Source: Auanema rhodensis
Taxonomy: Eukaryota > Animalia > Nematoda
NCBI GenBank assembly: GCA_964057225.1
Contig: OZ059897.1
Coordinates: 10,602,001 to 10,666,000, forward strand
DNA: 64,000 nt
Direction: 5' to 3'
Positions within the stretch are counted from its first letter, which is position 1, and each line of letters begins with the position of its first letter. The translations under genes were made by a program, and so were the position numbers. Under the pieces are notes generated by a model, which saw only the letters and a program-made list of their open reading frames with translations, ran no database searches and had not been told where the DNA came from. Of this stretch, positions 1-64,000 are shown in pieces.

Positions 1-326
1 GTAATATAGTGGTTAGTACTCTACGTTGTGGCCGTGGCGACACAGATTCGATTCCTGTCTTGGACATTTTTTGTTTTGAAATTAAAATGCTACAAAATTA
101 TTGCTTGCTTGTCATGTTAGATTTCTTTAATTTGAATACTTATTTAAGTTATAACAATTTTCGATTTAATCACGTTCAATCAACTGTATTGTTTTCAAAA
201 ATGAAGACAAAATTCAATTTCTGTTCATTGAATTAGAATTTTCATGTTGTCACACAGAAATTGAAGAATCTTAGTTTAATTCAGTAACAATGAACACACT
301 AACTTTGTTAAGTTGTTGTTATATCG

Positions 327-398
327 GCCCAAGTAATATAGTGGTTAGTACTCCACGTTGTGGCCGTGGCGACACAGATTCGATTCCTGTCTTGGATA
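327..398 (+). pseudogene. tRNA-His(GUG) degenerate allele G10A+G53A+G71A+C72T (class representative; also 5639, 8295, 10951, 13607 ...)
   Basis: Reads GTAATAT, AGATTCG and CTTGGAT: D, T and acceptor stems each mismatched. Confidence 0.75.
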
Positions 399-658
399 TT
401 TTTTGTTTTGAAATTTAAATGCTATAAAATTATTGCTTGCTTGTCATGTTAGATTTCTTTAATTTGAATACTTATTCAAGTTATAACAATTTACGATTTA
501 ATCACGTTCAATTAACTGTATTGTTTTCAAAAATAAAGACAAAATTCAATTTCTGTTCATTGAATTAGAATTATCATGTTGTCACACAGAAATTGAAGAA
601 TCTTAGTTCATTTCAGTAACAATGAACACACTAACTTTGTTAAGTTGTTGTAATATCG

Positions 659-730
659 GCCCAAGTAATATAGTGGTTAGTACTCCACGTTGTGGCCGTG
701 GCGACACAGATTCGATTCCTGTCTTGGGCA
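659..730 (+). pseudogene. tRNA-His(GUG) degenerate allele G10A+G53A only (class representative; also 1323, 8627, 9291, 11283 ...)
   Basis: A at 668 and 710 give A10.C25 and A53.C61 mismatches; B box reads GATTCGATTCC. Confidence 0.65.
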
Positions 731-990
731 TTTTTTGTTTTGAAATTAAAATGCTACAAAATTATTGCTTGCTTGTCATGTTAGATTTCTTTAATTTGAA
801 TACTTATTTAAGTTATAACAATTTTCGATTTAATCACGTTCAATCAACTGTATTGTTTTCAAAAATAAAGACAAAATTCAATTTCTGTTCATTGAATTAG
901 AATTTTCATGTTGTCACACAGAAATTGAAGAATCTTAGTTCAATTCAGTAACAATGAACACACTAACTTTGTTAAGTTGTTGTAATATTG

Positions 991-1062
991 GCCCAAGTAG
1001 TATAGTGGTTAGTACTCCACGTTGTGGCCGTGGCGACACAGGTTCGATTCCTGTCTTGGGCA
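991..1062 (+). tRNA. tRNA-His(GUG), canonical allele (reference copy)
   Basis: Full cloverleaf: acceptor GCCCAAG/CTTGGGC, D stem GTAT/GTAC, anticodon stem CCACG/CGTGG with loop TT-GTG-GC, 4-nt variable loop CGAC, T stem ACAGG/CCTGT with loop TTCGATT, discriminator A73. A box TAGTATAGTGG, B box GGTTCGATTCC, followed by T6. Confidence 0.96.
998..1051 (+). promoter_or_regulatory. Intragenic type-2 Pol III promoter (A box 998-1009, B box 1041-1051), reference copy
   Basis: TAGTATAGTGGT fits the A-box pattern and GGTTCGATTCC fits the B-box consensus GGTTCGANTCC. Confidence 0.88.
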
Positions 1063-1068
1063 TTTTTT
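1063..1068 (+). terminator. RNA Pol III terminator (T6), present in essentially every monomer
   Basis: TTTTTT directly after A73, followed by GTTTT. Interrupted only once that I saw (TATTTT at 52854-52859). Confidence 0.9.
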
Positions 1069-1654
1069 GTTTTGAAATTAAAATGCTATAAAATTATTGC
1101 TTGCTTGTCTTGTTAGATTTCTTTAATTTGAATACTTATTCAAGTTATAACAATTTTCGATTTAATCACGTTCAATCAACTGTATTGTTTTCAAAAATAA
1201 AGACAAAATTCAATTTCTGTTCATTGAATTAGAATTTTCATGTTGTCACACAGAAATTGAAGAATCTTAGTTCAATTCAGTAACAATGAACACACTAACT
1301 TTGTTAAGTTGTTGTAATATCGGCCCAAGTAATATAGTGGTTAGTACTCCACGTTGTGGCCGTGGCGACACAGATTCGATTCCTGTCTTGGGCATTTTTT
1401 GTTTTGAAATTAAAATGCTACAAAATTATTGCTTGCTTGTCATGTTAGATTTCTTTAATTTGAATACTTATTTAAGTTATAACAATTTTCGATTTAATCA
1501 CGTTCAATCAACTGTATTGTTTTCAAAAATAAAGACAAAATTCAATTTCTGTTCATTGAATTAGAATTTTCATGTTGTCACACAGAAATTGAAGAATCTT
1601 AGTTCATTTCAGTAACAATGAACACACTAACTTTGTTAAGTTGTTGTAATATTG

Positions 1655-1726
1655 GCCCAAGTAGTATAGTGGTTAGTACTCCACGTTGTGGCCGTGGCGA
1701 CACAGGTTCGATTCCTGTCTTGGGCA
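1655..1726 (+). tRNA. tRNA-His(GUG), canonical allele
   Basis: Gene body identical to 991-1062. Confidence 0.93.
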
Positions 1727-1986
1727 TTTTTTGTTTTGAAATTAAAATGCTATAAAATTATTGCTTGCTTGTCTTGTTAGATTTCTTTAATTTGAATACT
1801 TATTCAAGTTATAACAATTTTCGATTTAATCACGTTCAATCAACTGTATTGTTTTCAAAAATAAAGACAAAATTCAATTTCTGTTCATTGAATTAGAATT
1901 TTCATGTTGTCACACAGAAATTGAAGAATCTTAGTTTAATTCAGTAACAATGAACACACTAACTTTGTTAAGTTGTTGTAATATCG

Positions 1987-2058
1987 GCCCAAGTAATATA
2001 GTGGTTAGTACTCCACGTTGTGGCCGTGGCGACACAGATTCGATTCCTGTCTTGGACA
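1987..2058 (+). pseudogene. tRNA-His(GUG) degenerate allele G10A+G53A+G71A (class representative; also 2651, 3647, 9955 ...)
   Basis: Acceptor 3' strand CTTGGAC gives a C2.A71 mismatch. Confidence 0.75.
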
Positions 2059-2318
2059 TTTTTTGTTTTGAAATTAAAATGCTATAAACATATTGCTTGC
2101 TTGTCATGTTAGATTTCTTTAATTCAAATACATATTTAAGTTCTAACAATTTTTGATTTAATCACGTTCAATTGACTGTATTGTTTTCAAAAATAAAGAC
2201 AAAATTCAATTTCTGTTCATTGAATTAGAGTTTTCATGTTGTCACACAGAAATTGAAGAATCTTAGTTCATTTCAGTAACAATGAACACAATAACTTTGT
2301 TTAGTTGTTGTAATATCG

Positions 2319-2390
2319 GCCCAAGTAGTATAGTGGTTAGTACTCCACGTTGTGGCCGTGGCGACACAGGTTCGATTCCTGTCTTGGGCA
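2319..2390 (+). tRNA. tRNA-His(GUG), canonical allele
   Basis: Gene body identical to 991-1062. Confidence 0.93.
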
Positions 2391-3978
2391 TTTTTTGTTT
2401 TGAAATTTAAATGATATAAAATTATTGCTTGCTTGTCATGTTAGATTTCTTTAATTTGAATACTTATTCAAGTTATAACAATTTTCGATTTAATCACGTT
2501 CAATCAACTGTATTGTTTTCAAAAATGAAGACAAAATTCAATTTCTGTTCATTGAATTAGAATTTTCATGTTGTCACACAGAAATTGAAGAATCTTAGTT
2601 CAATTCAGTAACAATAAACACACTAACTTTGTTAAGTTGTTGTAATATCGGCCCAAGTAATATAGTGGTTAGTACTCCACGTTGTGGCCGTGGCGACACA
2701 GATTCGATTCCTGTCTTGGACATTTTTTGTTTTGAAATTAAAATGCTACAAAATTATTGCTTGCTTGTCATGTAAGATTTCTTTAATATGAATACTTATT
2801 TAAGTTATAACAATTTTCGATTTAATCACGTTCAATCAACTGTATTGTTTTTAAAAATAAAGACAAAATTCAATTTCTGTTCATTGAATTAGAATTTTCA
2901 TGTTGTCACACAGAAATTGAAGAATCTTAGTTCAATTCAGTAACAATGAACACACTAACTTTGTTAAGTTGTTTTAATATCGGCTCAAGTAATATAGTGG
3001 TTAGTACTCCACGTTGTGGCCGCGGTGACACAGATTCGATTCCTGTCTTGGGCATTTTTTGTTTTGAAATTAAAATGCTATAAAATTAGTGCTTGCTTGT
3101 CTTGTTAGATTTCTTTAATTTGAATACTTATTCAAGTTATAACAATTTTCGATTTAATCACGTTCAATCAACTGTATTGTTTTCAAAAATAAAGACAAAA
3201 TTCAATTTCTGTTCATTGAATTAGAATTTTCATGTTGTCACACAGAAATTGAAGAATCTTAGTTCAATTCAGTAACAATGAACACACTAACTTTGTTAAG
3301 TTGTTTTAATATCGGCTCAAGTAATATAGTGGTTAGTACTCCACGTTGTGGCCGTGGCGACACAGGTTCGATTCCTGTCTTGGGCATTTTTTGTTTTGAA
3401 ATTTAAATGCTATAAAATTATTGCTTGCTTGTCATGTTAGATTTCTTTAATTTGAATACTTATTCAAGTTATAACAATTTTCGATTTAATCACGTTCAAT
3501 CAACTGTATTGTTTTCAAAAATGAAGACAAAATTCAATTTCTGTTCATTGAATTAGAATTTTCATGTTGTCACACAGAAATTGAAGAATCTTAGTTCAAT
3601 TCAGTAACAATAAACACACTAACTTTGTTAAGTTGTTGTAATATCGGCCCAAGTAATATAGTGGTTAGTACTCCACGTTGTGGCCGTGGCGACACAGATT
3701 CGATTCCTGTCTTGGACATTTTTTGTTTTGAAATTAAAATGCTACAAAATTATTGCTTGCTTGTCATGTAAGATTTCTTTAATATGAATACTTATTTAAG
3801 TTATAACAATTTTCGATTTAATCACGTTCAATCAACTGTATTGTTTTCAAAAATAAAGACAAAATTCAATTTCTGTTCATTGAATTAGAATTTTCATGTT
3901 GTCACACAGAAATTGAAGAATCTTAGTTCAATTCAGTAACAATGAACACACTAACTTTGTTAAGTTGTTTTAATATCG

Positions 3979-7300: not shown

Positions 7301-8958
7301 CCAAGTAATATAGTGGTTAGTACTCCACGTTGTGGCCGTGGCGACACAGATTCGATTCCTGTCTTGGACATTTTTTGTTTTGAAATTAAAATGCTACAAA
7401 ATTATTGCTTGCTTGTCATGTAAGATTTCTTTAATATGAATACTTATTTAAGTTATAACAATTTTCGATTTAATCACGTTCAATCAACTGTATTGTTTTC
7501 AAAAATAAAGACAAAATTCAATTTCTGTTCATTGAATTAGAATTTTCATGTTGTCACACAGAAATTGAAGAATCTTAGTTCAATTCAGTAACAATGAACA
7601 CACTAACTTTGTTAAGTTGTTTTAATATCGGCTCAAGTAATATAGTGGTTAGTACTCCACGTTGTGGCCGTGGTGACACAGATTCGATTCCTGTTTTGGG
7701 CATTTTTTGTTTTGAAATTTAAATGCTATAAAATTATTGCTTGCTTGTCATGTTAGATTTCTTTAATTTGAATACTTATTCAAGTTATAACAATTTTCGA
7801 TTTAATCACGTTCAATCAACTGTATTGTTTTCAAAAATAAAGACAAAATTCAATTTCTGTTCATTGAATTAGAATTTTCATGTTGTCACACAGAAATTGA
7901 AGAATCTTAGTTCAATTCAGTAACAATGAACACACTAACTTTGTTAAGTTGTTGTAATATCGGCCCAAGTAATATAGTGGTTAGTACTCTACGTTGTGGC
8001 CGTGGCGACACAGATTCGATTCCTGTCTTGGACATTTTTTGTTTTGAAATTAAAATGCTACAAAATTATTGCTTGCTTGTCATGTTAGATTTCTTTAATT
8101 TGAATACTTATTTAAGTTATAACAATTTTCGATTTAATCACGTTCAATCAACTGTATTGTTTTCAAAAATGAAGACAAAATTCAATTTCTGTTCATTGAA
8201 TTAGAATTTTCATGTTGTCACACAGAAATTGAAGAATCTTAGTTTAATTCAGTAACAATGAACACACTAACTTTGTTAAGTTGTTGTTATATCGGCCCAA
8301 GTAATATAGTGGTTAGTACTCCACGTTGTGGCCGTGGCGACACAGATTCGATTCCTGTCTTGGATATTTTTTGTTTTGAAATTTAAATGCTATAAAATTA
8401 TTGCTTGTTTGTCATGTTAGATTTCTTTAATTTGAATACTTATTTAAGTTATAACAATTTACGATTTAATCACGTTCAATTAACTGTATTGTTTTCAAAA
8501 ATAAAGACAAAATTCAATTTCTGTTCATTGAATTAGAATTATCATGTTGTCACACAGAAATTGAAGAATCTTAGTTCATTTCAGTAACAATGAACACACT
8601 AACTTTGTTAAGTTGTTGTAATATCGGCCCAAGTAATATAGTGGTTAGTACTCCACGTTGTGGCCGTGGCGACACAGATTCGATTCCTGTCTTGGGCATT
8701 TTTTGTTTTGAAATTAAAATGCTACAAAATTATTGCTTGCTTGTCATGTTAGATTTCTTTAATTTGAATACTTATTTAAGTTATAACAATTTTCGATTTA
8801 ATCACGTTCAATCAACTGTATTGTTTTCAAAAATAAAGACAAAATTCAATTTCTGTTCATTGAATTAGAATTTTCATGTTGTCACACAGAAATTGAAGAA
8901 TCTTAGTTCAATTCAGTAACAATGAACACACTAACTTTGTTAAGTTGTTGTAATATTG

Positions 8959-9030
8959 GCCCAAGTAGTATAGTGGTTAGTACTCCACGTTGTGGCCGTG
9001 GCGACACAGGTTCGATTCCTGTCTTGGGCA
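8959..9030 (+). tRNA. tRNA-His(GUG), canonical allele
   Basis: Gene body identical to 991-1062. Confidence 0.93.
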
Positions 9031-9622
9031 TTTTTTGTTTTGAAATTAAAATGCTATAAAATTATTGCTTGCTTGTCTTGTTAGATTTCTTTAATTTGAA
9101 TACTTATTCAAGTTATAACAATTTTCGATTTAATCACGTTCAATCAACTGTATTGTTTTCAAAAATAAAGACAAAATTCAATTTCTGTTCATTGAATTAG
9201 AATTTTCATGTTGTCACACAGAAATTGAAGAATCTTAGTTCAATTCAGTAACAATGAACACACTAACTTTGTTAAGTTGTTGTAATATCGGCCCAAGTAA
9301 TATAGTGGTTAGTACTCCACGTTGTGGCCGTGGCGACACAGATTCGATTCCTGTCTTGGGCATTTTTTGTTTTGAAATTAAAATGCTACAAAATTATTGC
9401 TTGCTTGTCATGTTAGATTTCTTTAATTTGAATACTTATTTAAGTTATAACAATTTTCGATTTAATCACGTTCAATCAACTGTATTGTTTTCAAAAATAA
9501 AGACAAAATTCAATTTCTGTTCATTGAATTAGAATTTTCATGTTGTCACACAGAAATTGAAGAATCTTAGTTCATTTCAGTAACAATGAACACACTAACT
9601 TTGTTAAGTTGTTGTAATATTG

Positions 9623-9694
9623 GCCCAAGTAGTATAGTGGTTAGTACTCCACGTTGTGGCCGTGGCGACACAGGTTCGATTCCTGTCTTGGGCA
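9623..9694 (+). tRNA. tRNA-His(GUG), canonical allele
   Basis: Gene body identical to 991-1062. Confidence 0.93.
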
Positions 9695-10286
9695 TTTTTT
9701 GTTTTGAAATTAAAATGCTATAAAATTATTGCTTGCTTGTCTTGTTAGATTTCTTTAATTTGAATACTTATTCAAGTTATAACAATTTTCGATTTAATCA
9801 CGTTCAATCAACTGTATTGTTTTCAAAAATAAAGACAAAATTCAATTTCTGTTCATTGAATTAGAATTTTCATGTTGTCACACAGAAATTGAAGAATCTT
9901 AGTTTAATTCAGTAACAATGAACACACTAACTTTGTTAAGTTGTTGTAATATCGGCCCAAGTAATATAGTGGTTAGTACTCCACGTTGTGGCCGTGGCGA
10001 CACAGATTCGATTCCTGTCTTGGACATTTTTTGTTTTGAAATTAAAATGCTATAAACATATTGCTTGCTTGTCATGTTAGATTTCTTTAATTCAAATACA
10101 TATTTAAGTTCTAACAATTTTTGATTTAATCACGTTCAATTGACTGTATTGTTTTCAAAAATAAAGACAAAATTCAATTTCTGTTCATTGAATTAGAATT
10201 TTCATGTTGTCACACAGAAATTGAAGAATCTTAGTTCATTTCAGTAACAATGAACACAATAACTTTGTTTAGTTGTTGTAATATCG

Positions 10287-10358
10287 GCCCAAGTAGTATA
10301 GTGGTTAGTACTCCACGTTGTGGCCGTGGCGACACAGGTTCGATTCCTGTCTTGGGCA
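10287..10358 (+). tRNA. tRNA-His(GUG), canonical allele
   Basis: Gene body identical to 991-1062. Confidence 0.93.
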
Positions 10359-11614
10359 TTTTTTGTTTTGAAATTTAAATGCTATAAAATTATTGCTTGC
10401 TTGTCATGTTAGATTTCTTTAATTTGAATACTTATTCAAGTTATAACAATTTTCGATTTAATCACGTTCAATCAACTGTATTGTTTTCAAAAATAAAGAC
10501 AAAATTCAATTTCTGTTCATTGAATTAGAATTTTCATGTTGTCACACAGAAATTGAAGAATCTTAGTTCAATTCAGTAACAATAAACACACTAACTTTGT
10601 TAAGTTGTTGTAATATCGGCCCAAGTAATATAGTGGTTAGTACTCCACGTTGTGGCCGTGGCGACACAGATTCGATTCCTGTCTTGGACATTTTTTGTTT
10701 TGAAATTAAAATGCTACAAAATTATTGCTTGCTTGTCATGTTAGATTTCTTTAATATGAATACTTATTTAAGTTATAACAATTTTCGATTTAATCACGTT
10801 CAATCAACTGTATTGTTTTCAAAAATGAAGACAAAATTCAATTTCTGTTCATTGAATTAGAATTATCATGTTGTCACACAGAAATTGAAGAATCTTAGTT
10901 TAATTCAGTAACAATGAACACACTAACTTTGTTAAGTTGTTGTTATATCGGCCCAAGTAATATAGTGGTTAGTACTCCACGTTGTGGCCGTGGCGACACA
11001 GATTCGATTCCTGTCTTGGATATTTTTTGTTTTGAAATTTAAATGCTATAAAATTATTGCTTGCTTGTCTTGTTAGATTTCTTTAATTTGAATACTTATT
11101 TAAGTTATAACAATTTTCGATTTAATCACGTTCAATCAACTGTATTGTTTTCAAAAATAAAGACAAAATTCAATTTCTGTTCATTGAATTAGAATTTTCA
11201 TGTTGTCACACAGAAATTGAAGAATCTTAGTTCAATTCAGTAACAATGAACACACTAACTTTGTTAAGTTGTTGTAATATCGGCCCAAGTAATATAGTGG
11301 TTAGTACTCCACGTTGTGGCCGTGGCGACACAGATTCGATTCCTGTCTTGGGCATTTTTTGTTTTGAAATTAAAATGCTACAAAATTATTGCTTGCTTGT
11401 CATGTTAGATTTCTTTAATTTGAATACTTATTTAAGTTATAACAATTTTCGATTTAATCACGTTCAATCAACTGTATTGTTTTCAAAAATAAAGACAAAA
11501 TTCAATTTCTGTTCATTGAATTAGAATTTTCATGTTGTCACACAGAAATTGAAGAATCTTAGTTCATTTCAGTAACAATGAACACACTAACTTTGTTAAG
11601 TTGTTGTAATATTG

Positions 11615-11686
11615 GCCCAAGTAGTATAGTGGTTAGTACTCCACGTTGTGGCCGTGGCGACACAGGTTCGATTCCTGTCTTGGGCA
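11615..11686 (+). tRNA. tRNA-His(GUG), canonical allele
   Basis: Gene body identical to 991-1062. Confidence 0.93.
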
Positions 11687-12278
11687 TTTTTTGTTTTGAA
11701 ATTAAAATGCTATAAAATTATTGCTTGCTTGTCTTGTTAGATTTCTTTAATTTGAATACTTATTCAAGTTATAACAATTTTCGATTTAATCACGTTCAAT
11801 CAACTGTATTGTTTTCAAAAATAAAGACAAAATTCAAGTTCTGTTCATTGAATTAGAATTTTCATGTTGTCACACAGAAATTGAAGAATCTTAGTTTAAT
11901 TCAGTAACAATGAACACACTAACTTTGTTAAGTTGTTGTAATATCGGCCCAAGTAATATAGAGGTTAGTACTCCACGTTGTGGCCGTGGCGACACAGATT
12001 CGATTCCTGTCTTGGACATTTTTTGTTTTGAAATTAAAATGCTATAAACATATTGCTTGCTTGTCATGTTAGATTTCTTTAATTCAAATACATATTTAAG
12101 TTCTAACAATTTTTGATTTAATCACGTTCAATTGACTGTATTGTTTTCAAAAATAAAGACAAAATTCAATTTCTGTTCATTGAATTAGAATTTTCATGTT
12201 GTCACACAGAAATTGAAGAATCTTAGTTCATTTCAGTAACAATGAACACAATAACTTTGTTTAGTTGTTGTAATATCG

Positions 12279-12350
12279 GCCCAAGTAGTATAGTGGTTAG
12301 TACTCCACGTTGTGGCCGTGGCGACACAGGTTCGATTCCTGTCTTGGGCA
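12279..12350 (+). tRNA. tRNA-His(GUG), canonical allele
   Basis: Gene body identical to 991-1062. Confidence 0.93.
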
Positions 12351-13938
12351 TTTTTTGTTTTGAAATTTAAATGCTATAAAATTATTGCTTGCTTGTCATG
12401 TTAGATTTCTTTAATTTGAATACTTATTCAAGTTATAACAATTTTCGATTTAATCACGTTCAATCAACTGTATTGTTTTCAAAAATAAAGACAAAATTCA
12501 ATTTCTGTTCATTGAATTAGAATTTTCATGTTGTCACACAGAAATTGAAGAATCTTAGTTCAATTCAGTAACAATAAACACACTAACTTTGTTAAGTTGT
12601 TGTAATATCGGCCCAAGTAATATAGTGGTTAGTACTCCACGTTGTGGCCGTGGCGACACAGATTCGATTCCTGTCTTGGACATTTTTTGTTTTGAAATTA
12701 AAATGCTACAAAATTATTGCTTGCTTGTCATGTAAGATTTCTTTAATATGAATACTTATTTAAGTTATAACAATTTTCGATTTAATCACGTTCAATCAAC
12801 TGTATTGTTTTCAAAAATAAAGACAAAATTCAATTTCTGTTCATTGAATTAGAATTTTCATGTTGTCACACAGAAATTGAAGAATCTTAGTTCAATTCAG
12901 TAACAATGAACACACTAACTTTGTTAAGTTGTTTTAATATCGGCTCAAGTAATATAGTGGTTAGTACTCCACGTTGTGGCCGCGGTGACACAGATTCGAT
13001 TCCTGTTTTGGGCATTTTTTGTTTTGAAATTTAAATGCTATAAAATTATTGCTTGCTTGTCATGTTGGATTTCTTTAATTTGAATACTTATTCAAGTTAT
13101 AACAATTTTCGATTTAATCACGTTCAATCAACTGTATTGTTTTCAAAAATAAAGACAAAATTCAATTTCTGTTCATTGAATTAGAATTTTCATGTTGTCA
13201 CACAGAAATTGAAGAATCTTAGTTCAATTCAGTAACAATGAACACACTAACTTTGTTAAGTTGTTGTAATATCGGCCCAAGTAATATAGTGGTTAGTACT
13301 CTACGTTGTGGCCGTGGCGACACAGATTCGATTCCTGTCTTGGACATTTTTTGTTTTGAAATTAAAATGCTACAAAATTATTGCTTGCTTGTCATGTTTG
13401 ATTTCTTTATTTTGAATACTTATTTAAGTTATAATAATTTTCGATTTAATCACGTTCAATCAACTGTATTGTTTTCAAAAATGAAGACAAAATTCATTTT
13501 CTGTTCATTGAATTAGAATTTTCATGTTGTCACACAGAAATTGAAGAATCTTAGTTTAATTCAGTAACAATGAACACACTAACTTTGTTAAGTTGTTGTA
13601 ATATCGGCCCAAGTAATATAGTGGTTAGTACTCCACGTTGTGGCCGTGGCGACACAGATTCGATTCCTGTCTTGGATATTTTTTGTTTTGAAATTTAAAT
13701 GCTATAAAATTATTGCTTGCTTGTCATGTTAGATTTCTTTAATTTGAATACTTATTTAAGTTATAACAATTTTCGATTTAATCACGTTCAATCAACTGTA
13801 TTGTTTTCAAAAATGAAGACAAAATTCAATTTCTGTTCATTGAATTAGAATTATCATGTTGTCACACAGAAATTGAAGAATCTTAGTTCATTTCAGTAAC
13901 AATGAACACAATAACTTTGTTTAGTTGTTGTAATATCG

Positions 13939-14010
13939 GCCCAAGTAGTATAGTGGTTAGTACTCCACGTTGTGGCCGTGGCGACACAGGTTCGATTCCT
14001 GTCTTGGGCA
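13939..14010 (+). tRNA. tRNA-His(GUG), canonical allele
   Basis: Gene body identical to 991-1062. Confidence 0.93.
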
Positions 14011-14270
14011 TTTTTTGTTTTGAAATTTAAATGCTATAAAATTATTGCTTGCTTGTCATGTTAGATTTCTTTAATTTGAATACTTATTCAAGTTATAACA
14101 ATTTACGATTTAATCACGTTCAATTAACTGTATTGTTTTCAAAAATAAAGACAAAATTCAATTTCTGTTCATTGAATTAGAATTATCATGTTGTCACACA
14201 GAAATTGAAGAATCTTAGTTCATTTCAGTAACAATGAACACACTAACTTTGTTAAGTTGTTGTAATATCG

Positions 14271-14342
14271 GCCCAAGTAATATAGTGGTTAGTACTCCAC
14301 GTTGTGGCCGTGGCGACACAGATTCGATTCCTGTTTTGGGCA
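14271..14342 (+). pseudogene. tRNA-His(GUG) degenerate allele G10A+G53A+C66T (class representative; also 17923, 19915, 21907, 50458 ... 63749)
   Basis: CCTGTTTTGGGC creates an internal T4 at 14334-14337. Confidence 0.72.
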
Positions 14343-15930
14343 TTTTTTGTTTTGAAATTTAAATGCTATAAAATTATTGCTTGCTTGTCATGTTAGATTT
14401 CTTTAATTTGAATACTTATTCAAGTAATAACAATTTTCGATTTAATCACGTTCAATCAACTGTATTGTTTTCAAAAATAAAGACAAAATTCAATTTCTGT
14501 TCATTGAATTAGAATTTTCATGTTGTCACACAGAAATTGAAGAATCTTAGTTCAATTCAGTAACAATGAACACACTAACTTTGTTAAGTTGTTGTAATAT
14601 CGGCCCAAGTAATATAGTGGTTAGTACTCCACGTTGTGGCCGTGGCGACACAGATTCGATTCCTGTCTTGGACATTTTTTGTTTTGAAATTAAAATGCTA
14701 CAAAATTATTGCTTGCTTGTCATGTAAGATTTCTTTAATATGAATACTTATTTAAGTTATAACAATTTTCGATTTAATCACGTTCAATCAACTGTATTGT
14801 TTTCAAAAATAAAGACAAAATTCAATTTCTGTTCATTGAATTAGAATTTTCATGTTGTCACACAGAAATTGAAGAATCTTAGTTCAATTCAGTAACAATG
14901 AACACACTAACTTTGTTAAGTTGTTTTAATATCGGCTCAAGTAATATAGTGGTTAGTACTCCACGTTGTGGCCGTGGTGACACAGATTCGATTCCTGTTT
15001 TGGGCATTTTTTGTTTTGAAATTTAAATGCTATAAAATTATTGCTTGCTTGTCATGTTAGATTTCTTTAATTTGAATACTTATTCAAGTTATAACAATTT
15101 TCGATTTAATCACGTTCAATCAACTGTATTGTTTTCAAAAATAAAGACAAAATTCAATTTCTGTTCATTGAATTAGAATTTTCATGTTGTCACACAGAAA
15201 TTGAAGAATCTTAGTTCAATTCAGTAACAATGAACACACTAACTTTGTTAAGTTGTTGTAATATCGGCCCAAGTAATATAGTGGTTAGTACTCTACGTTG
15301 TGGCCGTGGCGACACAGATTCGATTCCTGTCTTGGACATTTTTTGTTTTGAAATTAAAATGCTACAAAATTATTGCTTGCTTGTCATGTTAGATTTCTTT
15401 AATTTGAATACTTATTTAAGTTATAACAATTTTCGATTTAATCACGTTCAATCAACTGTATTGTTTTCAAAAATGAAGACAAAATTCAATTTCTGTTCAT
15501 TGAATTAGAATTATCATGTTGTCACACAGAAATTGAAGAATCTTAGTTCATTTCAGTAACAATGAACACAATAAGTTTGTTTAGTTGTTGTAATATCGGC
15601 CCAAGTAGTATAGTGGTTAGTACTCCACGTTGTGGCCGTGGCGACACAGATTCGATTCCTGTCTTGGGCATTTTTTGTTTTGAAATTAAAATGCTACAAA
15701 ATTATTGCTTGCTTGTCATGTTAGATTTCTTTAATTTGAATACTTATTTAAGTTATAACAATTTTCGATTTAATCACGTTCAATCAACTGTATTGTTTTC
15801 AAAAATAAAGACAAAATTCAATTTCTGTTCATTGAATTAGAATTTTCATGTTGTCACACAGAAATTGAAGAATCTTAGTTCATTTCAGTAACAATGAACA
15901 CACTAACTTTGTTAAGTTGTTGTAATATTG

Positions 15931-16002
15931 GCCCAAGTAGTATAGTGGTTAGTACTCCACGTTGTGGCCGTGGCGACACAGGTTCGATTCCTGTCTTGGG
16001 CA
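15931..16002 (+). tRNA. tRNA-His(GUG), canonical allele
   Basis: Gene body identical to 991-1062. Confidence 0.93.
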
Positions 16003-17590
16003 TTTTTTGTTTTGAAATTAAAATGCTATAAAATTATTGCTTGCTTGTCTTGTTAGATTTCTTTAATTTGAATACTTATTCAAGTTATAACAATTTTCGA
16101 TTTAATCACGTTCAATCAACTGTATTGTTTTCAAAAATAAAGACAAAATTCAAGTTCTGTTCATTGAATTAGAATTTTCATGTTGTCACACAGAAATTGA
16201 AGAATCTTAGTTTAATTCAGTAACAATGAACACACTAACTTTGTTAAGTTGTTGTAATATCGGCCCAAGTAATATAGTGGTTAGTACTCCACGTTGTGGC
16301 CGTGGCGACACAGATTCGATTCCTGTCTTGGACATTTTTTGTTTTGAAATTAAAATGCTATAAACATATTGCTTGCTTGTCATGTTAGATTTCTTTAATT
16401 CAAATACATATTTAAGTTCTAACAATTTTTGATTTAATCACGTTCAATTGACTGTATTGTTTTCAAAAATAAAGACAAAATTCAAGTTCTGTTCATTGAA
16501 TTAGAATTTTCATGTTGTCACACAGAAATTGAAGAATCTTAGTTTAATTCAGTAACAATGAACACACTAACTTTGTTAAGTTGTTTTAATATCGGCTCAA
16601 GTAATATAGTGGTTAGTACTCCACGTTGTGGCCGCGGTGACACAGATTCGATTCCTGTTTTGGGCATTTTTTGTTTTGAAATTTAAATGCTATAAAATTA
16701 TTGCTTGCTTGTCATGTTGGATTTCTTTAATTTGAATACTTATTCAAGTTATAACAATTTTCGATTTAATCACGTTCAATCAACTGTATTGTTTTCAAAA
16801 ATAAAGACAAAATTCAATTTCTGTTCATTGAATTAGAATTTTCATGTTGTCACACAGAAATTGAAGAATCTTAGTTCAATTCAGTAACAATGAACACACT
16901 AACTTTGTTAAGTTGTTGTAATATCGGCCCAAGTAATATAGTGGTTAGTACTCTACGTTGTGGCCGTGGCGACACAGATTCGATTCCTGTCTTGGACATT
17001 TTTTGTTTTGAAATTAAAATGCTACAAAATTATTGCTTGCTTGTCATGTTTGATTTCTTTATTTTGAATACTTATTTAAGTTATAATAATTTTCGATTTA
17101 ATCACGTTCAATCAACTGTATTGTTTTCAAAAATGAAGACAAAATTCATTTTCTGTTCATTGAATTAGAATTTTCATGTTGTCACACAGAAATTGAAGAA
17201 TCTTAGTTTAATTCAGTAACAATGAACACACTAACTTTGTTAAGTTGTTGTAATATCGGCCCAAGTAATATAGTGGTTAGTACTCCACGTTGTGGCCGTG
17301 GCGACACAGATTCGATTCCTGTCTTGGATATTTTTTGTTTTGAAATTTAAATGCTATAAAATTATTGCTTGCTTGTCATGTTAGATTTCTTTAATTTGAA
17401 TACTTATTTAAGTTATAACAATTTTCGATTTAATCACGTTCAATCAACTGTATTGTTTTCAAAAATGAAGACAAAATTCAATTTCTGTTCATTGAATTAG
17501 AATTATCATGTTGTCACACAGAAATTGAAGAATCTTAGTTCATTTCAGTAACAATGAACACAATAACTTTGTTTAGTTGTTGTAATATCG

Positions 17591-17662
17591 GCCCAAGTAG
17601 TATAGTGGTTAGTACTCCACGTTGTGGCCGTGGCGACACAGGTTCGATTCCTGTCTTGGGCA
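17591..17662 (+). tRNA. tRNA-His(GUG), canonical allele
   Basis: Gene body identical to 991-1062. Confidence 0.93.
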
Positions 17663-19582
17663 TTTTTTGTTTTGAAATTTAAATGCTATAAAATTATTGC
17701 TTGCTTGTCATGTTAGATTTCTTTAATTTGAATACTTATTCAAGTTATAACAATTTACGATTTAATCACGTTCAATTAACTGTATTGTTTTCAAAAATAA
17801 AGACAAAATTCAATTTCTGTTCATTGAATTAGAATTATCATGTTGTCACACAGAAATTGAAGAATCTTAGTTCATTTCAGTAACAATGAACACACTAACT
17901 TTGTTAAGTTGTTGTAATATCGGCCCAAGTAATATAGTGGTTAGTACTCCACGTTGTGGCCGTGGCGACACAGATTCGATTCCTGTTTTGGGCATTTTTT
18001 GTTTTGAAATTTAAATGCTATAAAATTATTGCTTGCTTGTCATGTTAGATTTCTTTAATTTGAATACTTATTCAAGTTATAACAATTTTCGATTTAATCA
18101 CGTTGAATCAACTGTATTGTTTTCAAAAATAAAGACAAAATTCAATTTCTGTTCATTGAATTAGAATTTTCATGTTGTCACACAGAAATTGAAGAATCTT
18201 AGTTCAATTCAGTAACAATAAACACACTAACTTTGTTAAGTTGTTGTAATATCGGCCCAAGTAATATAGTGGTTAGTACTCCACGTTGTGGCCGTGGCGA
18301 CACAGATTCGATTCCTGTCTTGGACATTTTTTGTTTTGAAATTAAAATGCTACAAAATTATTGCTTGCTTGTCATGTAAGATTTCTTTAATATGAATACT
18401 TATTTAAGTTATAACAATTTTCGATTTAATCACGTTCAATCAACTGTATTGTTTTCAAAAATAAAGACAAAATTCAATTTCTGTTCATTGAATTAGAATT
18501 TTCATGTTGTCACACAGAAATTGAAGAATCTTAGTTCAATTCAGTAACAATGAACACACTAACTTTGTTAAGTTGTTTTAATATCGGCTCAAGTAATATA
18601 GTGGTTAGTACTCCACGTTGTGGCCGCGGTGACACAGATTCGATTCCTGTTTTGGGCATTTTTTGTTTTGAAATTTAAATGCTATAAAATTATTGCTTGC
18701 TTGTCATGTTGGATTTCTTTAATTTGAATACTTATTCAAGTTATAACAATTTTCGATTTAATCACGTTCAATCAACTGTATTGTTTTCAAAAATAAAGAC
18801 AAAATTCAATTTCTGTTCATTGAATTAGAATTTTCATGTTGTCACACAGAAATTGAAGAATCTTAGTTCAATTCAGTAACAATGAACACACTAACTTTGT
18901 TAAGTTGTTGTAATATCGGCCCAAGTAATATAGTGGTTAGTACTCTACGTTGTGGCCGTGGCGACACAGATTCGATTCCTGTCTTGGACATTTTTTGTTT
19001 TGAAATTAAAATGCTACAAAATTATTGCTTGCTTGTCATGTTTGATTTCTTTATTTTGAATACTTATTTAAGTTATAATAATTTTCGATTTAATCACGTT
19101 CAATCAACTGTATTGTTTTCAAAAATGAAGACAAAATTCATTTTCTGTTCATTGAATTAGAATTTTCATGTTGTCACACAGAAATTGAAGAATCTTAGTT
19201 TAATTCAGTAACAATGAACACACTAACTTTGTTAAGTTGTTGTAATATCGGCCCAAGTAATATAGTGGTTAGTACTCCACGTTGTGGCCGTGGCGACACA
19301 GATTCGATTCCTGTCTTGGATATTTTTTGTTTTGAAATTTAAATGCTATAAAATTATTGCTTGCTTGTCATGTTAGATTTCTTTAATTTGAATACTTATT
19401 TAAGTTATAACAATTTTCGATTTAATCACGTTCAATCAACTGTATTGTTTTCAAAAATGAAGACAAAATTCAATTTCTGTTCATTGAATTAGAATTATCA
19501 TGTTGTCACACAGAAATTGAAGAATCTTAGTTCATTTCAGTAACAATGAACACAATAACTTTGTTTAGTTGTTGTAATATCG

Positions 19583-19654
19583 GCCCAAGTAGTATAGTGG
19601 TTAGTACTCCACGTTGTGGCCGTGGCGACACAGGTTCGATTCCTGTCTTGGGCA
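19583..19654 (+). tRNA. tRNA-His(GUG), canonical allele
   Basis: Gene body identical to 991-1062. Confidence 0.93.
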
Positions 19655-21574
19655 TTTTTTGTTTTGAAATTTAAATGCTATAAAATTATTGCTTGCTTGT
19701 CATGTTAGATTTCTTTAATTTGAATACTTATTCAAGTTATAACAATTTACGATTTAATCACGTTCAATTAACTGTATTGTTTTCAAAAATAAAGACAAAA
19801 TTCAATTTCTGTTCATTGAATTAGAATTATCATGTTGTCACACAGAAATTGAAGAATCTTAGTTCATTTCAGTAACAATGAACACACTAACTTTGTTAAG
19901 TTGTTGTAATATCGGCCCAAGTAATATAGTGGTTAGTACTCCACGTTGTGGCCGTGGCGACACAGATTCGATTCCTGTTTTGGGCATTTTTTGTTTTGAA
20001 ATTTAAATGCTATAAAATTATTGCTTGCTTGTCATGTTAGATTTCTTTAATTTGAATACTTATTCAAGTTATAACAATTTTCGATTTAATCACGTTGAAT
20101 CAACTGTATTGTTTTCAAAAATAAAGACAAAATTCAATTTCTGTTCATTGAATTAGAATTTTCATGTTGTCACACAGAAATTGAAGAATCTTAGTTCAAT
20201 TCAGTAACAATAAACACACTAACTTTGTTAAGTTGTTGTAATATCGGCCCAAGTAATATAGTGGTTAGTACTCCACGTTGTGGCCGTGGCGACACAGATT
20301 CGATTCCTGTCTTGGACATTTTTTGTTTTGAAATTAAAATGCTACAAAATTATTGCTTGCTTGTCATGTAAGATTTCTTTAATATGAATACTTATTTAAG
20401 TTATAACAATTTTCGATTTAATCACGTTCAATCAACTGTATTGTTTTCAAAAATAAAGACAAAATTCAATTTCTGTTCATTGAATTAGAATTTTCATGTT
20501 GTCACACAGAAATTGAAGAATCTTAGTTCAATTCAGTAACAATGAACACACTAACTTTGTTAAGTTGTTTTAATATCGGCTCAAGTAATATAGTGGTTAG
20601 TACTCCACGTTGTGGCCGCGGTGACACAGATTCGATTCCTGTTTTGGGCATTTTTTGTTTTGAAATTTAAATGCTATAAAATTATTGCTTGCTTGTCATG
20701 TTGGATTTCTTTAATTTGAATACTTATTCAAGTTATAACAATTTTCGATTTAATCACGTTCAATCAACTGTATTGTTTTCAAAAATAAAGACAAAATTCA
20801 ATTTCTGTTCATTGAATTAGAATTTTCATGTTGTCACACAGAAATTGAAGAATCTTAGTTCAATTCAGTAACAATGAACACACTAACTTTGTTAAGTTGT
20901 TGTAATATCGGCCCAAGTAATATAGTGGTTAGTACTCTACGTTGTGGCCGTGGCGACACAGATTCGATTCCTGTCTTGGACATTTTTTGTTTTGAAATTA
21001 AAATGCTACAAAATTATTGCTTGCTTGTCATGTTTGATTTCTTTATTTTGAATACTTATTTAAGTTATAATAATTTTCGATTTAATCACGTTCAATCAAC
21101 TGTATTGTTTTCAAAAATGAAGACAAAATTCATTTTCTGTTCATTGAATTAGAATTTTCATGTTGTCACACAGAAATTGAAGAATCTTAGTTTAATTCAG
21201 TAACAATGAACACACTAACTTTGTTAAGTTGTTGTAATATCGGCCCAAGTAATATAGTGGTTAGTACTCCACGTTGTGGCCGTGGCGACACAGATTCGAT
21301 TCCTGTCTTGGATATTTTTTGTTTTGAAATTTAAATGCTATAAAATTATTGCTTGCTTGTCATGTTAGATTTCTTTAATTTGAATACTTATTTAAGTTAT
21401 AACAATTTTCGATTTAATCACGTTCAATCAACTGTATTGTTTTCAAAAATGAAGACAAAATTCAATTTCTGTTCATTGAATTAGAATTATCATGTTGTCA
21501 CACAGAAATTGAAGAATCTTAGTTCATTTCAGTAACAATGAACACAATAACTTTGTTTAGTTGTTGTAATATCG

Positions 21575-21646
21575 GCCCAAGTAGTATAGTGGTTAGTACT
21601 CCACGTTGTGGCCGTGGCGACACAGGTTCGATTCCTGTCTTGGGCA
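21575..21646 (+). tRNA. tRNA-His(GUG), canonical allele
   Basis: Gene body identical to 991-1062. Confidence 0.93.
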
Positions 21647-23566
21647 TTTTTTGTTTTGAAATTTAAATGCTATAAAATTATTGCTTGCTTGTCATGTTAG
21701 ATTTCTTTAATTTGAATACTTATTCAAGTTATAACAATTTACGATTTAATCACGTTCAATTAACTGTATTGTTTTCAAAAATAAAGACAAAATTCAATTT
21801 CTGTTCATTGAATTAGAATTATCATGTTGTCACACAGAAATTGAAGAATCTTAGTTCATTTCAGTAACAATGAACACACTAACTTTGTTAAGTTGTTGTA
21901 ATATCGGCCCAAGTAATATAGTGGTTAGTACTCCACGTTGTGGCCGTGGCGACACAGATTCGATTCCTGTTTTGGGCATTTTTTGTTTTGAAATTTAAAT
22001 GCTATAAAATTATTGCTTGCTTGTCATGTTAGATTTCTTTAATTTGAATACTTATTCAAGTTATAACAATTTTCGATTTAATCACGTTGAATCAACTGTA
22101 TTGTTTTCAAAAATAAAGACAAAATTCAATTTCTGTTCATTGAATTAGAATTTTCATGTTGTCACACAGAAATTGAAGAATCTTAGTTCAATTCAGTAAC
22201 AATAAACACACTAACTTTGTTAAGTTGTTGTAATATCGGCCCAAGTAATATAGTGGTTAGTACTCCACGTTGTGGCCGTGGCGACACAGATTCGATTCCT
22301 GTCTTGGACATTTTTTGTTTTGAAATTAAAATGCTACAAAATTATTGCTTGCTTGTCATGTAAGATTTCTTTAATATGAATACTTATTTAAGTTATAACA
22401 ATTTTCGATTTAATCACGTTCAATCAACTGTATTGTTTTCAAAAATAAAGACAAAATTCAATTTCTGTTCATTGAATTAGAATTTTCATGTTGTCACACA
22501 GAAATTGAAGAATCTTAGTTCAATTCAGTAACAATAAACACACTAACTTTGTTAAGTTGTTGTAATATCGGCCCAAGTAATATAGTGGTTAGTACTCCAC
22601 GTTGTGGCCGTGGCGACACAGATTCGATTCCTGTCTTGGACATTTTTTGTTTTGAAATTAAAATGCTACAAAATTATTGCTTGCTTGTCATGTTAGATTT
22701 CTTTAATTTGAATACTTATTTAAGTTATAACAATTTTCGATTTAATCACGTTCAATCAACTGTATTGTTTTCAAAAATGAAGACAAAATTCAATTTCTGT
22801 TCATTGAATTAGAATTTTCATGTTGTCACACAGAAATTGAAGAATCTTAGTTTAATTCAGTAACAATGAACACACTAACTTTGTTAAGTTGTTGTTATAT
22901 CGGCCCAAGTAATATAGTGGTTAGTACTCCACGTTGTGGCCGTGGCGACACAGATTCGATTCCTGTCTTGGATATTTTTTGTTTTGAAATTTAAATGCTA
23001 TAAAATTATTGCTTGTTTGTCATGTTAGATTTCTTTAATTTGAATACTTATTTAAGTTATAACAATTTACGATTTAATCACGTTCAATTAACTGTATTGT
23101 TTTCAAAAATAAAGACAAAATTCAATTTCTGTTCATTGAATTAGAATTATCATGTTGTCACACAGAAATTGAAGAATCTTAGTTCATTTCAGTAACAATG
23201 AACACACTAACTTTGTTAAGTTGTTGTAATATCGGCCCAAGTAATATAGTGGTTAGTACTCCACGTTGTGGCCGTGGCGACACAGATTCGATTCCTGTCT
23301 TGGGCATTTTTTGTTTTGAAATTAAAATGCTACAAAATTATTGCTTGCTTGTCATGTTAGATTTCTTTAATTTGAATACTTATTTAAGTTATAACAATTT
23401 TCGATTTAATCACGTTCAATCAACTGTATTGTTTTCAAAAATAAAGACAAAATTCAATTTCTGTTCATTGAATTAGAATTTTCATGTTGTCACACAGAAA
23501 TTGAAGAATCTTAGTTCAATTCAGTAACAATGAACACACTAACTTTGTTAAGTTGTTGTAATATTG

Positions 23567-56433: not shown

Positions 56434-56511
56434 GCCCAAGTAATATAATGGTTAGTACTCCACGTTGTGGCCGTGGCCGTGGCGACACAGATTCGATTCC
56501 TGTCTTGGACA
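56434..56511 (+). pseudogene. Degenerate tRNA-His with a 6-bp tandem duplication (CCGTGG) after G37
   Basis: TTGTGG-CCGTGG-CCGTGG-CGAC; also A10, A15, A53, A71. Confidence 0.82.
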
Positions 56512-61086: not shown

Positions 61087-61158
61087 GCCCAAGTAGTATA
61101 GTGGTTAGTACTCCACGTTGTGGCCGTGGCGACACAGGTTCGATTCCTGTCTTGGGCA
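61087..61158 (+). tRNA. tRNA-His(GUG), canonical allele
   Basis: Gene body identical to 991-1062. Confidence 0.93.
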
Positions 61159-61418
61159 TTTTTTGTTTTGAAATTTAAATGCTATAAACATATTGCTTGC
61201 TTGTCATGTTAGATTTGTTTAATTCAAATACTTATTTAAGTTCTATCAATTTTCGATTTAATCACGTTCAATCAACTGTATTGTTTTCAAAAATAAAGAC
61301 ATCTTTCAATTTCTGGTCATTGAATTAGAATTTTCATGTTGTCACACAGAAATTGAAGAATCTTAGTTCATTTCAGTAACAATGAACACACTAACTTTGT
61401 TAAGTTGTTGTAATATCG

Positions 61419-61490
61419 GCCCAAGTAGTATAGTGGTTAGTACTCCACGTTGTGGCCGTGGCGACACAGGTTCGATTCCTGTCTTGGGCA
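61419..61490 (+). tRNA. tRNA-His(GUG), canonical allele
   Basis: Gene body identical to 991-1062. Confidence 0.93.
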
Positions 61491-61750
61491 TTTTTTGTTT
61501 TGAAATTAAAATGCTATAAAATTATTGCTTGCTTGTCTTGTTAGATTTGTTTAATTCAAATACTTATTTAAGTTCTAACAATTTTCGATTTAATCACGTT
61601 CAATCAACTGTATTGTTTTCAAAAATAAAGACATCTTTCAATTTCTGGTCATTGAATTAGAATTTTCATGTTGTCACACAGAAATTGAAGAATCTTAGTT
61701 CATTTCAGTAACAATGAACACACTAACTTTGTTAAGTTGTTGTAATATCG

Positions 61751-61822
61751 GCCCAAGTAGTATAGTGGTTAGTACTCTACGTTGTGGCCGTGGCGACACA
61801 GGTTCGATTCCTGTCTTGGGCA
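61751..61822 (+). tRNA. tRNA-His(GUG), near-canonical (U28:G42 wobble)
   Basis: Anticodon stem CTACG/CGTGG; G10 and G53 intact. Confidence 0.82.
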
Positions 61823-62082
61823 TTTTTTGTTTTGAAATTTAAATGCTATAAACATATTGCTTGCTTGTCATGTTAGATTTCTTCAATTTGAATACTTATT
61901 CAAGTTATAACAATTTTTGATTTAATCACGTTCAATTAACTGTATTGTTTTCAAAAATAAAGACATCTTTCAATTTCTGGTCATTGAATTAGAATTTTCA
62001 TGTTGTCACACAGAAATTGAAGAATCTTAGTTCATTTCAGTAACAATGAACACACTAACTTTGTTAAGTTGTTGTAATATCG

Positions 62083-62154
62083 GCCCAAGTAGTATAGTGG
62101 TTAGTACTCCACGTTGTGGCCGTGGCGACACAGGTTCGATTCCTGTCTTGGGCA
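62083..62154 (+). tRNA. tRNA-His(GUG), canonical allele
   Basis: Gene body identical to 991-1062. Confidence 0.93.
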
Positions 62155-62746
62155 TTTTTTGTTTTGAAATTAAAATGCTATAAAATTATTGCTTGCTTGT
62201 CATGTTAGATTTCTTTAATTTGAATACTTATTCAAGTTATAACAATTTTCGATTTAATCACGTTCAATTAACTGTATTGTTTTCAAAAATAAAGACAAAA
62301 TTCAATTTCTGTTCATTGAATTAGAATTATCATGTTGTCACACAGAAATTGAAGAATCTTAGTTCATTTCAGTAACAATGAACACACTAACTTTGTTAAG
62401 TTGTTGTAATATCGGCCCAAGTAATATAGTGGTTAGTACTCCACGTTGTGGCCGTGGCGACACAGATTCGATTCCTGTTTTGGGCATTTTTTGTTTTGAA
62501 ATTTAAATGCTATAAAATTATTGCTTGCTTGTCATGTTAGATTTCTTTAATTTGAATACTTATTCAAGTTATAACAATTTTCGATTTAATCACGTTCAAT
62601 CAACTGTATTGTTTTCAAAAATAAAGACAAAATTCAATTTCTGTTCATTGAATTAGAATTTTCATGTTGTCACACAGAAATTGAAGAATCTTAGTTCATT
62701 TCAGTAACAATGAACACACTAACTTTGTTAAGTTGTTGTAATATCG

Positions 62747-62818
62747 GCCCAAGTAGTATAGTGGTTAGTACTCCACGTTGTGGCCGTGGCGACACAGGTT
62801 CGATTCCTGTCTTGGGCA
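62747..62818 (+). tRNA. tRNA-His(GUG), canonical allele
   Basis: Gene body identical to 991-1062. Confidence 0.93.
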
Positions 62819-63410
62819 TTTTTTGTTTTGAAATTAAAATGCTATGAAATTATTGCTTGCTTGTCTTGTTAGATTTCTTTAATTTGAATACTTATTCAAG
62901 TTATAACAATTTTCGATTTAATCACGTTCAATCAACTGTATTGTTTTCAAAAATAAAGACAAAATTCAATTTCTATTCATTGAATTAGAATTTTCATGTT
63001 GTCACACAGAAATTGAAGAATCTTAGTTCAATTCAGTAACAATAAACACACTAACTTTGTTAAGTTGTTGTAATATCGGCCCAAGTAATATAGTGGTTAG
63101 TACTCCACATTGTGGCCGTGGCGACACAGATTCGATTCCTGTTTTGGGCATTTTTTGTTTTGAAATTTAAATGCTATAAAATTATTGCTTGCTTGTCATG
63201 TTAGATTTCTTTAATTTGAATACTTATTCAAGTTATAACAATTTTCGATTTAATCACGTTCAATCAACTGTATTGTTCTCAAAAATAAAGACAAAATTCA
63301 ATTTCTGTTCATTGAATTAGAATTTTCATGTTGTCACACAGAAATTGAAGAATCTTTGTTCAATTCAGTAACAATGAACACACTAACTTTGTTAAGTTGT
63401 TGTAATATCG

Positions 63411-63488
63411 GCCCAAGTAATATAGTGGTTAGTACTCCACGTTGTGGCCGTGGCCGTGGCGACACAGATTCGATTCCTGTCTTGGACA
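63411..63488 (+). pseudogene. Degenerate tRNA-His with a 6-bp tandem duplication (second copy)
   Basis: Same insertion at 63448-63453; also A10, A53, A71. Confidence 0.82.
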
Positions 63489-64000
63489 TTTTTTGTTTTG
63501 AAATTAAAATGCTACAAAATTATTGCTTGCTTGTCATGTTAGATTTCTTTAATTTGAATACTTATTCAAGTTATAACAATTTTTGATTTAATCACGTTCA
63601 ATCAACTGTATTGTTTTCAAAAATATAGACAAAATTCAATTTCTGTTCATTGAATTAGAATTTTCATGTTGTCACACAGAAATTGAAGAATCTTAGTTCA
63701 ATTCAGTAACAATGAACACACTAACTTTGTTAAGTTGTTGTAATATCGGCCCAAGTAATATAGTGGTTAGTACTCCACGTTGTGGCCGTGGCGACACAGA
63801 TTCGATTCCTGTTTTGGGCATTTTTTGTTTTGAAATTTAAATGCTATAAAATTATTGCTTGCTTGTCATGTTAGATTTCTTTAATTCGAATACTTATTCA
63901 AGTTATAACAATTTTCGATTTAATCACGTTCAATCAACTGTATTGTTTTCAAAAATAAAGACAAAATTCAGTTTCTGTTCATTGAATTAGAATTTTCATG

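Follow-up and report, generated by a model that had tools for sequence, protein, structure and literature searches.

Sequence analysis of a 64,000-bp stretch of Auanema rhodense contig C5 (G000:C5:10602001-10666000 in a 180,911,798-bp assembly of 112 contigs), hereafter referred to as the window, revealed a slice of a far larger satellite in which every 332-bp unit carries a tRNA-His gene. The combined data led us to conclude that this is probably a decaying satellite derived from a tRNA-His gene, shaped by unequal exchange where selection is weak, which behaves neutrally in the window and probably never reaches the soma. The array was read letter by letter over its first 200 kb and in the window, and its right two thirds were counted by pattern search; genome-wide unit counts derive from searches for a tRNA-His-like 39-nt core and for the exact canonical gene, defined here as the 72-nt tRNA-His(GUG) sequence matching the dispersed, presumed working gene.

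Anatomy of the array

Tandem Repeats Finder (TRF) described positions 1-64000 as a single array with a period of 332, 192.7 copies, 96% matches and 0% indels, and a conserved 12-mer used as anchor set the register of 193 units. With 192 complete units, the uninterrupted tRNA-His array of more than 190 copies described in the initial annotation was fully reproduced. Successive units are spaced at 332 bp in 186 of 192 intervals, the remainder measuring 331 bp (three), 338 bp (two) or 333 bp (one), and ARAGORN called 191 tRNA-His(GTG) genes, without exception on the plus strand and with GTG at position 34. The window thus has the long head-to-tail arrangement, fixed unit length and high copy number of a satellite.

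Each unit consists of the 72-nt gene, a T6 run straight after A73 and the rest of a 260-bp AT-rich spacer. The T6 run, and with it an RNA polymerase III (Pol III) terminator of at least four T, was present in 182 of the 183 window units used for the terminator and spacer-end tallies. No relic of a second tRNA was found in the spacer, the two 166-bp halves of the unit proved unrelated with alignment scores not above those of shuffles, TRF reported no short internal repeat within the 332-bp unit, and an Rfam scan of positions 1-32000 returned no family besides tRNA.

The 3' end of the spacer reads ATATCG in 168 of 183 units, which places a G at position -1 of the next gene; counting also spacers that end in ATACCG, this base is G in 169 of 183 units (e.g. 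at 326, 658 and 990). A genomically encoded G-1 is the bacterial route to tRNA-His, whereas eukaryotes normally add G-1 post-transcriptionally, and the genomic G at -1 of the array genes may be a coincidence.

Intact and damaged gene copies

The 192 complete 72-nt genes comprise 34 sequence variants, the commonest of which is the canonical sequence with 45 copies, exactly the number given in the initial annotation. It reaches 67.3 bits with the Rfam tRNA model and folds into a cloverleaf of -23.6 kcal/mol with zero broken pairs. The identical sequence occurs in dispersed single copies on C4 and C5 and in a mini-array with a period of 157 bp, and the singles at C5:15629305 and C6:7439519 have the canonical 39-nt core; judged by this identity, it is presumably the working tRNA-His gene of the organism. 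Seven further units retain G10 and G53 and differ from the canonical gene by one or two other changes, in fair agreement with the approximately five near-canonical copies noted earlier.

Most of the remaining copies share one double lesion. G10-C25 and G53-C61 are near-universal tRNA pairs, and the changes G10A and G53A hit the A and B boxes of the internal Pol III promoter. Among the 190 window units that could be scored at both positions, A10 and A53 occur together in 129, G10 and G53 in 52, and the combinations A10/G53 and G10/A53 in five and four, so that only nine units are recombinant. Both pairs, together with the consensus internal promoter (box A T8-G19, box B GGTTCGANTCC), are kept in 52 of the 190 units. 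In the 129 units with A10 and A53, box B reads GATTCGA, and this element, to which TFIIIC binds, is damaged in 68% of window units.

The plain double mutant scores 53.4 bits, with the mismatches A10-C25 and A53-C61 and a cloverleaf of -18.6 kcal/mol, while the additional G71A of the commonest degraded allele (Table 1) introduces a C2-A71 mismatch in the acceptor stem and leaves 47.4 bits, three broken pairs and -14.9 kcal/mol. The commoner derivatives of the double mutant, which add G71A, C72T, C66T, C28T and others, lie at 43-50 bits and -10.6 to -16.5 kcal/mol. Overall, the lesions cost 14-24 bits on the tRNA model and break two to three cloverleaf pairs. All 97 Rfam hits in positions 1-32000, the part scored with the tRNA model, exceed the gathering score of 29 bits (canonical 67.3, mutants 43-61). 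That every unit still passes a permissive tRNA finder is probably the reason for the small number of published pseudogene calls. We propose that the A10 + A53 copies should be filed as pseudogenes, an effect on transcription being predicted from general knowledge of tRNA and Pol III.

Neutral drift in the window

Nucleotide diversity in the window amounts to 0.0375 for the gene against 0.0322 for the spacer, and separation by base class gave closely matching values for GC sites (0.046 in the gene, 0.043 in the spacer) and AT sites (0.0286 and 0.0287). Of the 42 singletons, 13 fall in the gene, no fewer than the 9.1 expected (p = 0.19). Diversity is evenly spread along the unit, in which no conserved sub-motif was detected in the window, and monomers differ by about 3.3% with position-specific patterns. 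Relative to the spacer, the tRNA part shows no signal of purifying selection in the window, and the possibility that the array is simply drifting, raised in the initial annotation alongside structural roles, fits these values. Among the distinct gene variants, 21 of 43 are G>A or C>T, a share that a GC-rich island decaying under the usual GC-to-AT bias would give.

Higher-order structure

Not a single pair of neighbouring monomers in the window is at least 99.4% identical. Identical or near-identical monomers recur in local patches at lags of 3, 5, 6, 7, 8, 11-13, 21-24 and 44, among them an 8-monomer block present in about 1.9 copies and the two arrangements listed in Table 1. As no one period dominates the window, the alpha-satellite-like organization proposed at first was confirmed as far as local multi-monomer patches are concerned, but not as a regular higher-order period. 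This patchwork records successive rounds of multi-monomer duplication or unequal exchange, by which dead and live genes are amplified side by side; the shared blocks bear out the earlier view that defective copies spread together with intact ones.

Table 1. Positions of representative units, spacers and higher-order blocks in the window.
Feature	Position	Strand	Remarks
Uninterrupted 332-bp tRNA-His satellite slice	1..64000	+	192 complete units and a cut unit at each end
Plain double-lesion allele G10A + G53A	659..730	+	11 copies
Canonical tRNA-His(GUG), example	991..1062	+	Full cloverleaf; box A T8-G19 and box B GGTTCGATTCC intact; A73; 45 copies
260-bp AT-rich spacer, example	1063..1322	+	Starts with T6 (Pol III terminator), ends with ATATCG
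Commonest degraded allele G10A + G53A + G71A	1987..2058	+	32 copies
Segmental duplication, lag 44 monomers (14.6 kb)	7963..16262, other copy from 22571	+	Diagonal runs of 16 and 8 near-identical monomers
Local higher-order repeat, 6-monomer (1,992-bp) block	16595..22238	+	About 2.8 copies; 11-monomer run at least 99.4% identical at lag 6
Unit with 6-bp duplication GGCCGT in the anticodon arm	56434..56511	+	338-bp spacing; sole unit missed by ARAGORN
Second unit with the same GGCCGT duplication	63411..63488	+	Called by ARAGORN as a 78-nt tRNA

Extent of the array and dispersed tRNA-His genes

Genome-wide, 2,063 tRNA-His-like cores (1,933 on the plus and 130 on the minus strand) and 681 exact canonical genes were counted. 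Approximately 2,045 units form one array that extends from C5:10.17 to about 11.1 Mb, near the middle of the 23.1-Mb contig, and spans about 0.9 Mb, about 0.68 Mb of which is repeat; outside it, only five singles and the mini-array were found, the rest lying on C5. The figure of more than 190 units, although correct for the window, therefore understates an array of which the window covers less than one tenth, and a copy number far above decoding need, as initially suspected, is evident. Likewise, the estimate that only about a quarter of the copies are intact holds for the window (24% canonical), whereas the canonical share rises to about 33% in the whole array and to 38% in the initial 200 kb. 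Deviations from the working sequence affect about 1,380 of the 2,063 tRNA-His units, and most of these units carry changes that disrupt promoter and stem. The window represents a relatively decayed, transposon-free stretch of the array; transposon insertions account for 39% of the first 190 kb.

Because at least 16 canonical tRNA-His genes (the five singles and 11 exact mini-array copies) lie outside the array in gene-rich arms, histidine decoding is independent of it. This dispersed set looks like one of ordinary size for a single isoacceptor, and the soma would not miss the array, which is not needed to explain histidine decoding. The mini-array (G000:C5:9083689-9086219) has 11 exact canonical genes in about 17 slots and is located in an apparent gene-rich arm, 1.1 Mb to the left of the array. 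From this location, it is a candidate for the source locus of the satellite and likely the main somatic supply of tRNA-His.

The satellite was also recovered from independent public data, which argues that the array is not an invention of the assembly. Between 24 and 59% of the sampled satellite 31-mers occur in public runs from three studies with three organism labels, and most of the run contigs matching the window are at least 99% identical to it; the comparison used the Logan contigs of 23 runs and is thus silent on depth, copy number, strand and expression. No RNA run was among those that contained the stretch. Two of these runs (X6 and X7), which bear two other organism labels, have the same satellite at window positions 327-2982, again in contigs that are mostly at least 99% identical. 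Their source is either the same species under another name or strain, or a very close relative with an almost unchanged satellite.

Probable germline restriction and candidate break sites

A recent preprint (10.64898/2026.08.27.747507) describes the 180.9-Mb A. rhodense germline assembly with 19,554 tRNA loci, of which 215 are classed as pseudogenes, and reports that every autosome loses both ends and a repeat-rich central block, while retained regions typically contain less than 10% repeats per 10 kb. Some of the germline-restricted tandem repeats are 5S rRNA, 'several tRNA loci' and U2 arrays, and the fluorescence in situ hybridization probes of that study were aimed at repeats other than the 332-bp satellite. 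Apart from this preprint, no account of germline-restricted tRNA gene arrays turned up in a literature search.

Satellite repeats and transposon insertions account for the window and the initial 200 kb of the array, as expected for a central autosome block with more than 90% repeats. Matches to arbitrary AT-rich motifs, taken as a rough indicator of complex sequence, are about one third as frequent at C5 9.92-12.65 Mb as in the flanking arms. From this position we consider it likely that the array is germline-restricted, i.e. part of an eliminated central block. Of the structural options listed in the initial annotation, eliminated DNA is the one that best fits the repeat-rich mid-contig position, the placement itself being one that we infer, while a centromere, boundary or subtelomere role found no support in our analysis. 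The idea that the histidine array is a special case largely fell away, given the 19,554 tRNA loci and the arrays of several tRNA loci in the preprint.

The elimination motif of O. tipulae is centred on GGC/GCC. In A. rhodense, a palindromic core, TAGGCTNAGCCTA, which is a telomere-repeat-like GGC/GCC dyad, was found perfectly matched or with one mismatch at apparent gene-arm borders of other contigs: C1:5565624 and 5566284, C1:18003661 and 18004335, C3:4998856 and 4999352, C3:8877553, C4:6191303 and 6191727, C6:3832633 and 3832731, C6:12660531, C7:7183091, and C7:13636130. The sites are often paired, 100-700 bp apart, and are presumably, to judge from their sequence and location, the published elimination break sites (SFE palindromes) and their back-up copies. 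Two other sets of candidates were discarded. Two AT-rich palindromes near the position given in the preprint as 'chromosome 5, 16,502,174' were not enriched over a reversed-pattern control (contig C5 need not equal chromosome 5 of the preprint), and C5:9.916 and 12.650 Mb turned out to be chance matches in complex DNA, without Pfam content.

Proposed origin and alternative explanations

We propose that one cytosolic tRNA-His(GUG) gene would have been amplified to about 2,045 units, carrying along the Pol III terminator and 260 bp of AT-rich flanking DNA. Growth and reshuffling would have proceeded via unequal exchange or duplication of multi-monomer blocks, irrespective of whether these held dead or intact genes, and an early monomer with the linked changes G10A and G53A, affecting the internal promoter and invariant pairs alike, would have spread across most of the window. 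Its gene part would now gain mainly GC-to-AT changes at the rate of the spacer and would have turned into neutral satellite DNA. The array would reside in a central block that the germline alone keeps and the soma loses around the 12-cell stage; selection in this block would be weak, and repeats and transposons could pile up. The approximately 665 still-canonical array copies may well be transcribed in the germline, yet we saw no indication that the array is maintained for that purpose.

Several findings weigh against this proposal. Over the leftmost 200 kb of the array, gene diversity is approximately 2-3.6 times lower than spacer diversity, which leaves room for past constraint or homogenisation of the gene; block amplification without selection on the unit is seen in the window, but only in part in these left 200 kb. 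Moreover, the search of C5 for the SFE core TAGGCTNAGCCTA returned only degenerate matches (11524799 and 12982710), so that the two internal break sites were not located, and the break-site-like core at C5:11524799, CAGGCTTAGCCTA, lies to the right of the array and is compatible with an array in a retained arm.

The latter observations would agree with an array located in somatically retained DNA, where it would form an oversized, partly decayed portion of the ordinary tRNA complement. We regard this as unlikely: although the core at C5:11524799 is a good one and internal C5 break sites did not emerge from the motif search, retained regions in the preprint are typically below 10% repeats per 10 kb and autosome centres are eliminated. 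The 0.9-Mb block, on the other hand, is essentially all satellite and transposons, and hits to complex sequence are depleted over 9.92-12.65 Mb.

A second alternative is suggested by the oocyte-type 5S arrays of Xenopus, in which Pol III units that serve the germline alone are repeated thousands of times in tandem, each unit with its own pseudogene; these genes are conserved, expressed in oocytes and silenced in the soma by chromatin. By analogy, the intact tRNA-His copies might boost tRNA-His during oogenesis and early cleavage, with elimination clearing them from the soma and defective copies as passengers. The 681 exact canonical copies, whose A and B boxes are undamaged, the T6 terminator kept in 99% of units, the lower diversity of the gene in the left 200 kb and the presence of 5S, U2 and several tRNA arrays in the eliminated DNA listed by the preprint would all suit such a germline supply. 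We nevertheless find it doubtful, as two thirds of the units are non-canonical, gene and spacer drift alike in the window, where the constraint seen in Xenopus is absent, a T run in AT-rich DNA is expected to persist without selection, and there is no obvious special demand for histidine.

Still less probable is a structural function as a chromosome-specific central repeat, e.g. a block that would serve homolog recognition or resemble a pairing centre and to which a specific protein, perhaps TFIIIC or a zinc-finger protein, would bind. The confinement of the 332-bp unit, in this assembly, to one chromosome-scale contig, near its middle, and the almost invariant unit length would be in keeping with it, and the preprint discussion floats a homolog-recognition role for autosome-specific central repeats. 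However, unequal exchange by itself yields confinement to one chromosome, no conserved sub-motif stands out from a diversity that is even over the unit, box B, the TFIIIC-binding element, is damaged in 68% of window units, and transposons and an inversion heavily disrupt the continuity of the array. Taken in general terms, it seems improbable to us that the satellite is a functional germline-only element, be it a deletable 'oocyte-type' tRNA battery or a homolog-recognition central repeat, that would be switched off by programmed DNA elimination and not by chromatin.

An assembly artefact, in which a shorter array was inflated or another structure mis-assembled, is very improbable even though long near-identical arrays are hard to assemble, given array 31-mers and contigs, many of them at least 99% identical, in the runs of three separate studies, the resolvability by HiFi reads of monomers with about 3.3% divergence and position-specific patterns, and the unique long-read mapping across repeat blocks reported by the preprint.

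Comparison with known systems and implications

Tandem tRNA arrays are already known from Entamoeba and Arabidopsis, and those of A. rhodense have been reported in outline by the preprint. The Entamoeba arrays (PMC2652664) resemble the present one in their length, their head-to-tail order and the considerable fraction of the genome that they occupy, and a structural role has been suggested for them, but they contain almost all tRNA genes, with up to five genes per unit and microsatellite-like short tandem repeat spacers. The A. rhodense array, in contrast, has one gene per unit, a plain AT-rich spacer, dispersed working copies and mostly damaged array copies, and is not of the Entamoeba type. 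The Pro and Ser-Tyr-Tyr clusters on Arabidopsis chromosome 1 (PMC7544208, PMC12308677) likewise consist of redundant tandem tRNA genes in repeat-rich chromatin and contribute little to the tRNA pool in most tissues, where dispersed copies do the work. They comprise tens of units, however, and are epigenetically silenced and can be reactivated, whereas the array described here has about 2,000 units, many of them mutationally dead, and its somatic removal would be physical. A similar path was taken by gene-derived satellites such as the 5S-rDNA-derived satellites of fish, in which a small Pol III gene and its spacer became a satellite and then degenerated; there the gene part is usually unrecognisable or truncated, while a third of the copies here are still identical to the working gene.

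The germline-restricted non-coding RNA arrays of the preprint concern the same genome and the same class of array (several tRNA loci), with a main text that gives no isotype, unit, size or decay state of the arrays. New here are the genome-wide size of the array and its restriction to a single chromosome; the linked lesion in promoter and structure, its block-wise spread and the equal drift of gene and spacer; and the normal dispersed gene set, together with the contrast between about 1,380 deviant units among 2,063 for histidine and 215 annotated pseudogenes for all tRNA loci genome-wide.

The array illustrates what becomes of a housekeeping Pol III gene that ends up in a region where satellites form, in this case probably a region excluded from the soma. 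Such units lead to an overstated count of functional tRNA genes (19,554 loci with 215 pseudogenes), and inferences on codon usage and tRNA supply drawn from gene counts would consequently be wrong. If the array is germline-restricted, its comparison with tRNA arrays in retained DNA would offer a natural test of the idea, put forward in the preprint, that selection is weak in eliminated DNA. The significance of the array would rise if it were shown to be expressed specifically in the germline or to act in pairing.

Left edge of the array and insertions

The left edge of the array at C5:10172419 is abrupt and lies beside transposon terminal repeats. Over G000:C5:10172419-10180900 (L011:419-8900), 332-bp units alternate with 208-bp units whose spacer is shorter by 124 bp, and at the edge itself the first gene is preceded by C instead of G at -1. 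A cluster of Tc1/mariner-type transposase genes (HTH_Tnp_Tc3_2 and DDE_3) adjoins the array on the left (L010:3257-4285, 5482-6493 and 7690-8701, all on the minus strand), and two of these genes form a 2.2-kb tandem duplicate. Further inside, 127 units are found as an inverted block (G000:C5:10189837-10231487) between non-array insertions of 7.1 and 5.7 kb. An 8.3-kb insertion (G000:C5:10307680-10316028) sits approximately 2-11 bp upstream of a tRNA-His 5' end, and the other insertions in the first 190 kb, about seven in number, occupy assorted positions in the spacer.

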